Below the pieces are notes generated by a model. That model did no database searches and had not been told where the DNA came from. It saw only the letters and a list, made by a program, of their open reading frames with translations. A DNA stretch of 64,000 nucleotides from Blastocystis sp. Blastoise. Taxonomy: Eukaryota; Protista; Bigyra: Opalinata. Of the stretch, positions 35,231 through 54,985 are shown one piece after another. Position 1 is the first letter of the stretch. Every line of letters begins with the position of its first letter. The stretch lies in assembly GCA_039096225.1 (NCBI GenBank), contig JBBPEB010000020.1, forward strand, positions 372,001-436,000. The letters are read 5' to 3'. Both the position numbers and the translations under genes were made by a program.

Positions 35231-37936
35231 CACAGGAGACAAGAGTTGAACTCAATAAAAAAATGATGTTCGAAATTTTTGTTAAAAATTTTTTCATTTG
35301 TTTGTTGTCAATGATTTCATTTATAATTAATATATTTGATATTTGACTTCATATTTAATAACAACGTACAACAATAAACATATTTTACAATTTTCTTTTG
35401 TTTTTAAAAGACTTCGACAGCAGATCACCAGACAATGTTAACTTAATAAACTCTTAAAACGTTTTAATATGTGTTTAGAACCACTCATGGATACTATATA
35501 TCACTTATTTGAAAAAGTTAAGACAACATGTTGAACTGATACTGACAATGTTTGTCTTAAAAAGTTAGTTATGAGTCTTTATGAGTTGTATATGTCATAA
35601 ATAAGCTTAAAATAAATAAATTTGTTTTTAATTGTCTTTAATTAGTGAAATAAGTCGTTTAAAAAGAAGAAAGCATTTTGGATACTATAGTTTATTTTGA
35701 CAATTTCTCCATCAATATTTATTTTTAAAAAATAAATAAAACTTATATAGAAACTAGATAACATATAGTTTATATATTTATAAAAATATTATCAAAATAT
35801 AAAATAACTTTTGAGATAAAAAATTATATATGAAAAACATAAAAATTATTATTTTTCAAAAAAAGGGTATACTTTATAACATTAATTTCACTGTCAGGCA
35901 CTTTTGAGTTTTTGAAGGTTTTTGATTGGCTAATTTTCGTTCAGAACTTATTCAGCCAATAAAATTTGAATAAAAAAAAGACTTAGGCAAAAAAATGAAA
36001 ATTTTCACAAAAATTTTAAGACGACTTTTTATTAGACTTTAAAAACCCTATTAGACATATTTTAATAAAGAATTGACAATATTTTCTTGTTTTATAAGGT
36101 CACACAATATCAAAAACGTTTTTCTTTATTTTAAAGTCGCAATTCTGGCAAATAATGGGGTCAATATTTTAAAACCTTTTGTTGCTCTGTTTAAAGTTTA
36201 GATCCTCTTAGAGTCACAAGAATGTGTAAAAGTGAATAAAAAGACCTCTATGGGTCAAAACCAAAATTCAGCCAAAAAGTCAAAATTTTGTATTTTTTCT
36301 ACACTGAAAAAATGAGACGAGCCTTTTTATCTGGCAGACAGTTAGACCAGATTTTTTGAATTGTATTTTATTTACGGGAAAAATTTTGTTGTTCAAATCT
36401 GAGTGTATTTATATTTGAGAGCATATCACAGGAGACATGACTTCTAGGATTGTTTTTTTAGTTTATTTTATTATGGTAAAAAGGAATCCAACAGAAAAGT
36501 TTGTTTGAATTTTAAAATAGACCATCCTTTTCCAGAATCAAATAAGACTCCTTCAAATCAAACTATTTAGACATTATTTTACAACCAAGCAGTTGTATTA
36601 GTCATAAACAATAGTCTTTTAAAAGTTTTGCATACTGATTAAGAATATAGAGAAAATTAACTTTTTATTTTTATGCTACAACTCTTGGGATACAATAATA
36701 AAGCATCAAACAAATAATTTAAAACTACTTACTCATAAAAATAATTTACAAATCGAAAATTAAATGAAAAATAAAATTTACGAAGAAAAGTCTTCGTTTC
36801 CGAAAATTCTTCGTGTTAAAGCGAAGAATTAAATATTATTCAAAAATATGTCTTTATATTTTATTTGTCATAAAGATTTTCCTCTAGAATATATTGTGCT
36901 TTAGGCATGTATGTTTAAAATAGATATGCTATATATAATTCTCTTTGATGTTTATAATTAACATATTTCTATATAGATTCTTCAATTATCTGACAGAACT
37001 TATCGTTTTGATTATTTTCTTAGGTCCTAAGATACTGTGAATGTATTGAATGGATTTGTTGTTTATTATTATCACAAGGTAATTAGCATTTATTTATATT
37101 TTATTTTATAATAGGTTTTTTGCTTCTTCTCTATGTGGATTACTCTAAGAGATGCCTTGGAATCGTTGTTATTTGTATATATCTAAATTATTTGAATTTT
37201 ATGCATTAGCACATTTTCTTTTTAGTTCATATTAATATTTATCATTTGATTTTGTCACTTTGTTTCATTTATAAAATGAAATTCTAACGTATTTATTTAT
37301 ATATAGAATTTTTGCCAAGGTGATTACCATTCATAATGTCCGTAGTTTCTTCTACAATCATTTAATATGAATTATCAACACGCTTTATATTGTTTTGTAT
37401 ATTATTATTATATTTATTATTATATTTATTATTATGTTTATTATTATATTTATTATTATATTTATTATTATGTTTATTATTATGTTTATTATTATATTTA
37501 TTATTATGTTTATTATTATGTTTATTATTATATAGTTACAAGTGTATTCTAATACAGAATTATTAGTAGAATTATCATGTACATATATATTTTATAATAT
37601 TTTAACAAATGTTACTCTAGGTAAATATTGTAATATCAAACATTCTACAACGAATAATACTACTATATCTTCACCTACTAATGAATCTATGATTAACAAA
37701 GCAAAATTACTATTCAAACAAGAAAACACGGTAAATCATGAAGAACCTACTGCAAAAACACATATTTCCACGGCTATTCATGAGTTAGATCAAGATCCAG
37801 TATTACCTACTGATTTATATATAATATCACTTCCTACATACCCTTGTGATCTTAATGTTGACAAACTACAAAAGATGTATATATTATTATTATTATTATT
37901 ATTATTATTATTATTATTATTATTATTATTATATAG

Positions 37937-53150: not shown

Positions 53151-54985
53151 ATCTTTAAATTTATGTATTTTATAGTCATTAAAAATTTGTGATTTCAAAA
53201 AAGAAATACTTTAAATATAATATTTCTTGCTATTATAATTATTATTTACATATTTTTTATAGACACATATCTTGGGCTTTCATTTATAGCCTTTTATTAA
53301 ATTATAATTAATTAGCTTATATTTTATTTTAAAAGTGCATATTTTTTAAATTTTTACTTAATATAGTCATAAATAGTCGATTTTATATTATTTTTGTTAT
53401 GTTTATAAATTAATAACCTATGAAACTACTAATCAAAAGAAATGAAAAGCAAAATTTGTTTTTATATTCTTGAATAAATAAAAATAATAATCCAATCATA
53501 TAACTTATATGAAACCACATCGACAAAATAATTGGATATAAGCGCTATTATGTCCACTCAAATTGTATATATATATTTTAGTATCCATTAACATTGTTGT
53601 AAAAAACGAGCTGAAAAAATCTGAATCAGTCTGATCCGTTCAAAGCTTATGGATCAAACTTTTTGATTCACGGGAATGCCTGTCAGTGTTTCTCAGTCAA
53701 TATTTTATTATTTTATATAATTTTAACAAATAAATACATAGAATAAAACATATTAATAATATAATTTTTAATATTTAAAATTAATTAAGAAATGAGTTCA
53801 GTAGCGTCAATAGTATAACATGTTAAAAAACTGAAAATTGAAAAATCATTTTTCTCAAAATTTTCTGAAAGTTGACAAATCAAATTCATATTTGACAATT
53901 AATTTTTATATATTTGAAAACTACACCTTATATGTATTGCATTTCTCAAAAAAATTAATCAAAAATAAGTTAGACGAGTGTATGAGTATATGCACATGTT
54001 GGCTCAAAATTTGTAAAAAGTAGTTATATGTGTCCTAAATCACAAATTTGGACAATTGTATAAATATTATTACTTTATAATGAGTTTAAAGCGTAAAATA
54101 ATTTTGAATTGTCTGTTTGACTGTCTTAAGTGAAGAGATTCAATACACTTTTTGTAATAATGAGTATTAGAGTGTTTAATGTTTACAATAATAAAAGAAT
54201 TATTTGAAATAAAGGTGGTTGTGTGTTTGACCAAAATGTTAAAATGAGTCTATTTTTCCAAAATGGTTGTAATAAGTATGCATTGAGTGTTTTTTGAATG
54301 TTTTATATAAAAATCTAAAATAAATAAATAATTTAAGTTGTTCAAAAAATTATTTTTTTAGAATTACAATAGTTAAGTCAAGAGATTCAAGTCACTTTTT
54401 ATAATAATAATAAATAGACTTATTATAGAACATAAAATATTAAAAATTAGTTTAATTAAATGTAGTTGACTGTTTGATAGGAATGTTAAAATGGGTAAAA
54501 TGATTTTAATTGCTTCTAAAACCGTATAATACGTTTATTCTTGACTAAATACAAAACTATTATAGTTTTAGAATGTTTTTTGTCTTTCAAAACAACTCAT
54601 TTTTTGTAATTGCGACTTTAAACAAATGAAATTCAAGTTACTTTTTATAAATTAAAATAATAAATTAAATATATATGTATATTAATATAAAATTAGTTAA
54701 AATAAAAGTGGATGTGTTTGAAAAAAAGTTAAAAGTTTTTTAAAGTTTTTTAAAATAACTTATTTGTTTTATAAACGATATTTAATGTACAACAGCTAAG
54801 ATTTTTTATTGTTTAAATATATTTATGATATAGAATGTAATTCTACTTTTCCATTCTAGTTTTTAGTTTTATATAATGAAATTGTCATTAATGTTATTAT
54901 TAAATTTGAAATAAATTTGAATTCAGAATATAAAATAATGAAAAGATAACTTTTTTACAAACTTTTTCTTTTATTTTTATTTAGA

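Follow-up and report, generated by a model that had tools for sequence, protein, structure and literature searches.

A probable, recently mobile CACTA transposon loaded with host gene fragments in the protist Blastocystis

That DNA transposons capture and shuffle pieces of host genes is textbook knowledge for plants, exemplified by Pack-MULE, Pack-CACTA and Tgm-Express elements. Typical autonomous CACTA elements are not known to carry 10 kb of such pieces. Tgm-Express1 of soybean (five host gene fragments, 5.7 kb, no transposase) gives rise to chimeric splicing, as detected by RT-PCR (PMC1947982). Outside plants, captured host coding sequence is reported for the C. elegans DNA transposon Turmoil-1 (PMC2572040), and gene copies borne by transposons are reported from Pyrenophora tritici-repentis (PMC3538342). 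Few non-plant cases have been reported, and our literature search for such capture in protists or in Blastocystis found none. The organism studied here has been cultured (xenically), and the genome paper puts transposable elements at only 5.6-7.5% in the tortoise isolates, with CACTA elements unmentioned. Here we analysed a 64,000-nt stretch of the genome of Blastocystis sp. Blastoise, referred to as the window (on contig C28; other contigs are named likewise). Positions 35889-53688 very probably represent a transposase-encoding CACTA/EnSpm (CMC) element that recently moved as a whole, together with about 10.2 kb of transduplicated cargo accumulated stepwise. A sequence-only reading of the window had already proposed a cargo-carrying CACTA element in a protist-like genome, and this is supported by paired ends that recur, by parent genes located elsewhere and by an intact open reading frame of the Tnp2 family. 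The ends and the non-coding flanking parts of the element are as follows.

35889-53688: CACTA transposon, 17.8 kb (window copy, also called the C28 copy; C28:407889-425688)
35886-35888, no strand: left copy of the target-site duplication (TSD), TTT, matching 53689-53691
35889-35900, plus strand: left terminal inverted repeat (TIR), CACTGTCAGGCA, one of two motif matches in the window
35889-36475, plus strand: left subterminal region, 587 bp, common to a large CACTA family
36476-37468, no strand: subfamily-specific non-coding stretch, matched only by the sister copies (100% C15, 91.6% C33)
52745-53157, no strand: right subterminal tandem array, 4 x 103 bp, repeat family D16
53677-53688, minus strand: right TIR, CACTGACAGGCA in minus-strand reading
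53689-53691, no strand: right copy of the TSD, TTT

The two ends agree in 11 of 12 positions and show the CACT(A/G) start of CACTA/EnSpm elements, and the CACTG termini, the 12-bp TIR and the TTT duplication on both sides were found as first described. In the C33, C17 and C28r elements the TIR agrees in 14/14 positions, and one relative begins with CACTA. A degenerate 12-mer TIR motif matched the window at exactly two sites, both being the element ends; at least two matches were also obtained in 7/100 shuffled windows, so the pair alone is not significant. The ends gain their significance not from the motif count but because the same paired ends recur around the same unit elsewhere. Perfect 3-bp TSDs, as is typical for CACTA elements, flank the window copy (TTT), the C15 copy (TCG), a C17 element (AAA) and an element nested in the C15 copy (ATA), with a chance of a 3/3 match in the local AT-rich DNA of about 0.035 per site as estimated from base composition. 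Older members have imperfect TSDs (C33 TTT/ATT, C28r AAT/AAA, C21 TAA/ATA, C24 AAA/TAT). When the empty site is reconstructed, it can be aligned over the junction point to 34977-35141 with 70% identity in 169 nt (E 7e-12), its right side being identical in 17/17 positions, which bears out the match to the neighbouring repeat at 35097-35140 noted earlier. A short motif common to both subterminal regions of the window element was sought and none was found.

The genome-wide search for recurring paired termini found them around this cargo at two further loci, where flanks and TSDs differ. The unit so enclosed is 15-25 kb long (C15:760025-785582, TSD TCG, and C33:680283-695977). There are thus three full collinear copies on three contigs, with unrelated flanks and homology that stops precisely at the CACTG termini, and together with the paralogous empty site they show the mobility expected of a CACTA element. 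Over about 13 kb, with the Cys-rich and BEACH-b segments set aside, 14 substitutions separate the C28 and C15 copies; this difference is only about 0.1%, and therefore the cargo-loaded element moved very recently. Large deletions and replacements distinguish the copies. The C15 copy additionally contains a 7.9-kb CACTA element, nested with its own TSD ATA at the equivalent of 51051-51053 (transposase exon 2). A 6.2-kb relative at C17 has the TSD AAA and none of the cargo of the window element; two transposase-encoding relatives that share the left end (C15:1033000-1052999, C2:78000-94500) carry none of it either.

The cargo, five fragments of four host genes, lies between the left subterminal region and the transposase 3' end. 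All of them contain introns and lie in sense orientation on the plus strand, opposite to the transposase.

37469-37881, plus strand: cargo 1, BEACH-gene fragment a; parent C25:598252-597784 (minus), 90% identity
37882-40461, plus strand: cargo 2, HEAT-like repeat gene fragment; parent C22:692327-689561 (minus), 88-93% identity
40462-41204, plus strand: cargo 3, BEACH-gene fragment b, in which the BEACH domain begins; parent C25:590596-589872, 87% identity
41278-44238, plus strand: cargo 4, piece from the interior of a large gene for a USP/UCH deubiquitinase; parent C14:190384-193214
44239-44333, no strand: AT-rich filler of about 95 nt between USP and Cys-rich fragments, beginning with intron-like GTATAT
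44334-47847, plus strand: cargo 5, 3.5-kb piece from the interior of a giant Cys-rich gene with many exons

The sequence-only reading had counted pieces of at least six unrelated genes (about 11 kb); this was too high, as five fragments from four parents (about 10.2 kb) are documented and a further stretch of about 1 kb (36476-37468) could be traced to no parent in the genome and contains no ORF over 45 aa. For each cargo piece a longer parent with extra exons on both sides exists elsewhere (C25, C22, C14 and the Cys-rich repeats), and the cargo is not the sole genomic copy of these genes. Pfam identified Beach in the exons of the BEACH parent and UCH in the USP parent, while the name HEAT-like rests on weak HEAT matches (E 0.017-0.078) and on our reading of the repeats. 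The HEAT-like fragment is without the 5' exons of its parent and the remainder of the last exon, and it contains in-frame stops and frameshifts. It is missing from the C33 copy, where the BEACH fragment continues instead and extends fragment a to C25:597044. The USP fragment, with exons 91-98% identical to the parent, carries a 2-nt deletion and in-frame stops and ends within a parent exon. The Cys-rich fragment is 97.4-98.7% identical to four parent copies, which is inside the parents' own diversity; its homology really ends near 47821, again within a parent exon. The Cys-rich parent gene itself is present in seven copies in repeats of at least 13.7 kb.

Cargo private to the window element was ruled out by two observations. 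First, a transposase-less 7.9-kb CACTA family with at least 17 loci carries the C25 BEACH and C14 USP pieces, including 40572-40861 of BEACH fragment b; the nested copy of this family gave no transposase match inside, and all its matches were to host genes or CACTA ends. Second, an element at C28:168662-179629, whose transposase is 48% identical in protein to that of the window element, carries USP and Cys-rich pieces 93-98% identical to those of the window element. The two pieces are joined there at about 10-13 nt of microhomology, and in the annotation this USP::Cys-rich fusion appears as the gene WA158_006907, 340 aa long. In the window element each of the junctions (J1-J4) either falls within a (TAT)n/(TA)n tract of an intron or links a truncated exon with intron-like GTATAT. 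The position of junctions in or at AT-microsatellite introns therefore suggests template switching, a suggestion that draws on junction anatomy only, in a genome with AT microsatellites everywhere.

The following course of events is very probable. The cargo was built stepwise, with the BEACH and USP pieces being old and common to other CACTA lineages, and the Cys-rich piece being much closer to its parents. The HEAT-like piece replaced part of a BEACH piece only in the lineage of the window copy, and cargo modules also passed between CACTA lineages. Fragments may have been joined by microhomology-driven template switching during excision-gap repair, a joining that would be aided by the (TA)n/(TAT)n tracts filling the introns of this genome. 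The whole 17.8-kb unit moved by cut-and-paste at a very recent date.

A possible though doubtful alternative is that two CACTA elements inserted near each other and in direct orientation into a host gene and that complementary aberrant excisions of the inner ends allowed the outer ends to mobilise the intervening host DNA as a hybrid element, a route proposed for Arabidopsis Pack-CACTA (PMC6379663). The left half would then derive from a non-autonomous element loaded with BEACH+USP and the right half from an autonomous one, with the Cys-rich piece trapped between. The Cys-rich piece does sit exactly between the older cargo and the transposase module, and the C28 and C33 copies are mosaic: their identity is 88-93% from the left end through USP but 97.5-98.8% over the remainder, which starts with the Cys-rich piece and runs to the right end. 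The two ends also differ in distribution. A query with the left 587 bp yielded at least 87 candidate loci (40 of them were scored, each being 81-100% identical, and 37 of these 40 matches ended at query position 587), whereas the right end is shared with only few loci and is specific to the subfamily of the window element. However, internal TIR remnants, which were sought throughout the element including the fragment junctions, were not found, the HEAT-like replacement in mid-cargo, far from either end, is left unexplained by this route, and several junctions are exon-to-intron fusions at microsatellites.

The right part of the element encodes the transposase and a second, small gene.

47848-48286, no strand: spacer downstream of the transposase stop codon, 100% in the C15 copy, 97.5% in the C33 copy
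48287-50694, minus strand: transposase exon 3, with the conserved Tnp2-family motifs D93, D184, DPMH and E520
50695-50928, minus strand: transposase intron 2, 234 nt, GT..AG
50929-51265, minus strand: transposase exon 2, Cys-rich N-terminal part
51334-51266, minus strand: transposase intron 1, 69 nt
51335-51571, minus strand: transposase exon 1, ATG at 51571
51705-52323, plus strand: small companion gene, probably three exons, divergently placed from the transposase, no known domain

Splicing of the transposase gene without stops, as claimed from the sequence at first sight, was confirmed: the three minus-strand exons (51571-51335, 51265-50929, 50694-48287) join across GT..AG introns to 993 codons. 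The same had been claimed for the companion gene. Its ORF set is indeed conserved, with 100% identity in the three copies and 46-62% in two other CACTA lineages of the genome, but stop-free splicing is only plausible here, as the predicted exon joins require frame changes. A Pfam scan of the companion exons found no domain. For the transposase and five paralogues a direct Pfam scan did not detect Transposase_21 and returned only DUF4218 with 22.4 bits (cut-off 27). We then found that a profile of seven Blastocystis transposase sequences leads to 85 proteins; 7 of the 10 hits tested match Pfam Transposase_21 (PF02992), 6 of them above the cut-off and 3 also matching DUF4218 or DUF1258. Comparison of the Blastocystis paralogues with this distant set by hhalign gave a probability of 99.95% (E 1e-37) and aligned the candidate D, D, E, CxxC and DxxH motifs, the candidates D93, D184 and E520 being invariant. 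The atlas neighbours of the transposase likewise carry PF02992. Judged by these profile comparisons the transposase belongs to the Tnp2/Transposase_21 (CACTA/EnSpm) family, with candidate residues for the DDE core. From the intact ORF and the near-identical copies we infer that the transposase may well be active, and the description of the element as apparently functional in the sequence-only reading rests on the same two grounds.

It appears unlikely that the element is not autonomous in practice, i.e. that its ORF is intact but inactive or silent and its copies were moved in trans by other CACTA transposases. Candidates for such a role would be numerous, as there are at least 76 transposase-like matches of several lineages in the genome, and the left end is common to elements whose transposases are only 38-48% identical to that of the window element. 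Against this stands the 993-codon ORF, intact and with conserved catalytic candidates. Exon 3 differs by a single nucleotide between the C28 and C15 copies with 100% identical protein, the frame of the C33 copy is also open (annotated as a 1006-aa protein), and the right end is specific to the subfamily.

Regarding the fate of the cargo, the fragments are, on the evidence of their reading frames, truncated and apparently decaying copies rather than working genes. Stops and frameshifts relative to the parent exons occur in all three element copies. An effect of the cargo on its parent genes through chimeric transcripts, proteins or small RNAs, for which it would be retained, is argued for some Pack-MULEs and has RNA-level evidence in soybean Tgm-Express1, yet we consider it quite unlikely here. 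All five fragments share the same sense orientation, the hybrid introns at the cargo joins retain GT..AG ends, and WA158_006907 in the related C28 element is annotated as a fusion gene, although this annotation is a prediction and not proof of expression. dN/dS of cargo exons vs parents is 0.1-0.5 for most exons. This is below the value expected if the parent were constrained and the copy neutral, and therefore past constraint or gene conversion may have acted. Apart from the stops and frameshifts, retention is opposed by the large deletions and replacements among the copies and by the join of BEACH fragment a to the HEAT-like fragment; a chimeric ORF across this hybrid intron was rejected on reading the sequence, since the phases mismatch and a stop follows immediately.

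It is hardly credible that the unit arose by segmental duplication or misassembly, is not a transposon and ends in CACTG by chance: the single-window motif count is not significant alone, but homology ends exactly at CACTG on three contigs with differing 3-bp duplications, which we count as refuting, and there are in addition the nested C15 insertion with its own TSD, the paralogous empty site and the encoded Tnp2-family transposase.

The order of capture, the mechanism of junction formation and the fate of the fragments could be worked out in this 33-Mb genome, and the capture history is tractable because both the move of a loaded, transposase-bearing element and the insertion of a nested relative into one of its copies are very recent, and because the parents are all identifiable. 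Elements of this kind are built mostly of gene-like sequence and can be annotated as genes, as in the case of WA158_006907. More tentatively, we suggest a live transduplication system outside plants, in which several CACTA lineages, at least one of them transposase-encoding, might capture multi-kb gene pieces, stack them in one orientation, swap modules and join them via the AT-microsatellite introns that mark this genome, yielding chimeric gene models such as the one just named. If true, this would be an exon-shuffling engine in a tortoise gut protist, open to a near real-time view since copies differ by about 0.1%.

Among the known systems, Pack-MULEs of rice and maize resemble the window element in multi-fragment transduplication, chimeric ORFs and a possible regulatory or coding afterlife. 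They differ in belonging to the Mutator superfamily, with a 9-bp TSD and long TIRs, and in being non-autonomous elements of plants. With En/Spm of maize and other autonomous CACTA elements the window element shares CACT(A/G) ends, a 3-bp TSD and a transposase of the Tnp2 family, and perhaps also subterminal repeats, of which it has the tandem array at the right end, and a putative second element gene; the latter, however, is small, divergent from the transposase and, as far as Pfam tells, unrelated to TnpA. In contrast to the window element, the Turmoil-1 and Pyrenophora cases involve other transposon families, none of them CACTA, and one or two captured sequences. Tgm-Express1 (PMC1947982) has the same CACTA-type ends and likewise several intron-containing fragments of unrelated host genes with usable splice sites, whereas the window element is 17.8 kb long, has an intact transposase gene and resides in a stramenopile protist. 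Pack-CACTA and Pack-TYPE elements of Arabidopsis, rice and maize (PMC6379663, PMC8903248) are similar in having TIRs and TSDs around gene fragments from multiple loci and in their recent mobility, but the two-insertion capture route proposed there explains only part of the anatomy of the window element. Pack-TYPE elements are defined by host coding fragments between TIRs, which the window element has (five fragments, four parents), and by the lack of a transposase gene, as seen in the 7.9-kb BEACH+USP family. The window element is thus Pack-like in behaviour but not Pack by definition, because it retains an intact 993-codon transposase gene.

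The genome comprises 33.3 Mb in 34 contigs (about 22% G+C), the window corresponding to C28:372001-436000, where Cn denotes contig n. The left end of the 17.8-kb element, at 35889, starts with CACTGTCAGGCA, the right end, at 53688, closes with the reverse complement of CACTGACAGGCA, and TTT flanks both, as the sequence-only reading had described (CACTG ends with a 3-bp duplication). A degenerate form of the terminal 12-mer has only two matches in the window, located at the two element ends in inverted orientation; taken alone this is not significant, since 7 of 100 shuffles reach as many. 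The termini do recur as paired ends: the left 600 bp were found again at C15:760025 (3 substitutions across the first 587 bp) and C33:695977 (88% identity), and the right 600 bp at C15:785582 (100%) and C33:680283 (98%). The three loci align collinearly from end to end, the alignment breaks off exactly at the CACTG ends, and the flanks show no relation to one another. Target site duplications (TSDs) are TCG in the C15 copy, TTT/ATT in the C33 copy and AAA in a 6.2-kb relative on C17. The proposed likeness of the reconstituted empty site to a neighbouring repeat was borne out, with alignment over the junction to 34977-35141, a diverged duplicate nearby (70%, 169 nt, E 7e-12). Collinear copies ending at CACTG, unrelated flanks and the empty-site match therefore establish that the element and its boundaries are real. 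The element sits in one of two diverged (70%) local duplicates spaced about 760 bp from each other (34977-35141 versus 35738-35888 plus 53692-53708).

Element genes and array (exons from the C33-copy protein and sequence reading)
51571-51335, minus strand: transposase exon 1
51265-50929, minus strand: transposase exon 2
50694-48287, minus strand: transposase exon 3
51705-52323, plus strand: small companion gene, 100% conserved in the three copies
Right subterminal region: tandem array, 4 x 103 bp

A database search with the long minus-strand ORF returned only Blastocystis sp. Blastoise proteins. The exon model, guided by the C33 copy's annotated 1006-aa product and by reading of the sequence, contains GT..AG introns of 69 and 234 nt and a frame of 993 codons with zero stops, so that the claimed splicing without stops holds for the transposase. 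For the companion gene the ORFs are conserved in three copies, while its predicted splicing is only plausible; counterparts in two other CACTA lineages share 46-62% identity with the gene, and a Pfam scan found no known domain in it. The sole Pfam match of the transposase was DUF4218, below the cut-off. A profile built from seven Blastocystis sequences yielded 85 proteins among 1.8 billion representatives; Transposase_21 (Tnp2) was matched in 7 of 10 scanned hits (6 above the cut-off), three of which additionally match DUF4218 or DUF1258. Profile-profile comparison of the Blastocystis and Tnp2 sets gave a probability of 99.95% (E 1e-37), with D93, D184, the CRFC motif, DPMH and E520 (window-protein numbering), all invariant, falling on columns that are also invariant in the Tnp2 set. 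Atlas language-model neighbours of the transposase belong to the same Pfam family (Transposase_21). Because this evidence for a Tnp2-family transposase coincides with CACTG ends and 3-bp TSDs, we class the element, by its sequence, as a member of CACTA/EnSpm. The window region is rich in CACTA elements: a second CACTA-type transposase gene lies near the right window edge (60696-63080, minus strand, 34% identity to the C33 protein), and a short transposase-like fragment is present upstream of the element (31223-31570).

The cargo consists of truncated, decaying host gene fragments gained at different times. Searching the genome with the DNA of 36476-48286 and aligning it to the matched loci resolved five pieces from four parent genes; fragments of several host genes had rightly been recognized, but four parents are documented rather than the at least six unrelated genes claimed.

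Cargo pieces and parent loci
37469-37881, plus strand (sense): BEACH a, parent C25:598252-597784, 90%
37882-40461, plus strand (sense): HEAT-like, parent C22:692327-689561, 88-93%
40462-41204, plus strand (sense): BEACH b, parent C25:590596-589872, 87%
41278-44238, plus strand (sense): USP/UCH, parent C14:190384-193214, 83% overall, exons 91-98%
44334-47847, plus strand (sense): Cys-rich, seven parent loci, 95-96% with gaps, about 98% by substitutions
Cys-rich repeats: C31:1313336-1327000, C8:2320000-2333572, C13:1255061-1268691, C30:23661-37405

The transposase is read from the minus strand, whereas all five pieces lie in sense on the plus strand. They are not the sole genomic copies, as the parents are long multi-exon genes elsewhere that extend past the captured pieces at either side. 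Pfam Beach and UCH are present in parent exons, and HEAT matches in the C22 parent are weak. Compared with these exons the cargo carries frameshifts and in-frame stops; for instance, the first USP exon has both a 2-nt deletion and a stop, and a HEAT-like exon contains an in-frame stop. No source for 36476-37468 was detected in the genome-wide DNA search. The Cys-rich parent sits in repeats of at least 13.7 kb (95% identical, about seven occurrences), mostly 25-120 kb away from contig ends; the exons of this giant multi-exon gene gave no Pfam domain, and it may represent a subtelomeric surface-protein family.

The Tnp2-type element moved as one 17.8-kb unit together with its cargo. Compared region by region, the C28 (window) copy and the C15 copy are separated by 14 substitutions in about 13 kb, leaving aside the Cys-rich piece and a part of BEACH b that is rich in microsatellites. 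The Cys-rich piece shows 44 differences, and some C15 variants agree in short runs with particular parent copies, which is consistent with ectopic gene conversion. The C15 copy was later struck in transposase exon 2 by a 7.9-kb CACTA element (TSD ATA). Identity between the C28 and C33 copies is mosaic: everything up to and including USP agrees at 88-93%, the Cys-rich piece and all that lies to its right at 97.5-98.8%. The sharp step in divergence (7-12% in 35889-44238, 1-2.5% in 44334-53688) suggests that element lineages recombined or formed hybrids. The C33 copy is without the HEAT-like piece and its BEACH fragment runs on to C25:597044, a pattern indicating that, in the lineage of the C28 and C15 copies, the HEAT-like piece took the place of BEACH sequence.

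The same cargo modules turn up in CACTA lineages whose transposases differ greatly.

Cargo-bearing relatives
C15:775039-782944: nested Pack-type element, 7.9 kb, TIR CACTGGTAGGCA, TSD ATA, in transposase exon 2 of the C15 copy
C28:168662-179629: relic CACTA, 11 kb, left end 75% and transposase protein 48% identical to the window element
C28:175328-178150: WA158_006907, predicted chimera joining upstream USP exons and a portion of the USP catalytic exon to a Cys-rich exon

The nested element, in which no transposase match was found, carries C25:597115-590177 (BEACH, gapped) followed by C14:189146-190397 (USP). Its loaded part matches at least 17 loci at 83-99% identity, and with copies on C21 and C16 that are 98-99% identical the family looks currently active. 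In the relic, C14:187173-190943 (USP, 93% identical to the window-element piece) is joined to a Cys-rich piece (98% identical to that of the window element) at a microhomology of roughly 10-13 nt; public annotation lists this fusion as the 340-aa gene WA158_006907, adjoining WA158_006906, the transposase gene of the same element. Two further transposase-bearing left-end relatives and the C17 element contain none of the window-element cargo. The left-end relative at C15:1033000-1052999 has its own transposase and shares its left ~1.5 kb with the Pack family; the slot ahead of the transposase holds a long plus-strand gene in which four PHD-finger matches and one bromodomain were found, and a 1499-aa low-complexity ORF comes before it. 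This gene may be a captured whole gene or may belong to the element.

Typical introns of this genome start with GTATAT, continue as (TAT)n or (TA)n for 50-300 nt and end with TATAG (window 37334-44316 and parent loci). These tracts dominate repeat finding, and because of them alignment ends near junctions are uncertain by tens of bases. BEACH a and the HEAT-like piece meet inside a (TAT)n tract, forming a hybrid GT..AG intron, BEACH b and USP meet in an intron stretch of (TA)n/(TAT)n, and the HEAT-like and USP exons are truncated and run directly into intron-like GTATAT sequence. This junction anatomy (AT-tract joins, exon-intron fusions, microhomology) suggests that the fragments were probably joined via template switching during excision-gap repair. 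A rival route, capture by the hybrid-element model (PMC6379663), would account for where the Cys-rich piece lies and for the left/right mosaic but leaves the HEAT-like replacement unexplained.

Tortoise Blastocystis isolates have 21-23% G+C, long and variable introns and 5.6-7.5% transposable elements, with CACTA not mentioned (PMC10690189). Outside plants, cases of transduplication have been reported in C. elegans (Turmoil-1, PMC2572040) and in a fungus, Pyrenophora tritici-repentis (PMC3538342); in the literature searched we found no reports for Blastocystis or other protists. The window element is well supported, introduces no new principle and holds real interest for the genomics of transposons and protists. 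Among known systems, soybean Tgm-Express1 and the plant Pack-CACTA/Pack-TYPE elements come closest. Like the window element, Tgm-Express1 carries five host fragments, but it is without a transposase, whereas the window element has a transposase gene. It operates similarly to Pack-TYPE elements, yet departs from the 'non-autonomous' part of their definition by its own transposase gene, which may be active, while its 7.9-kb relatives agree with the definition, 'non-autonomous' included.
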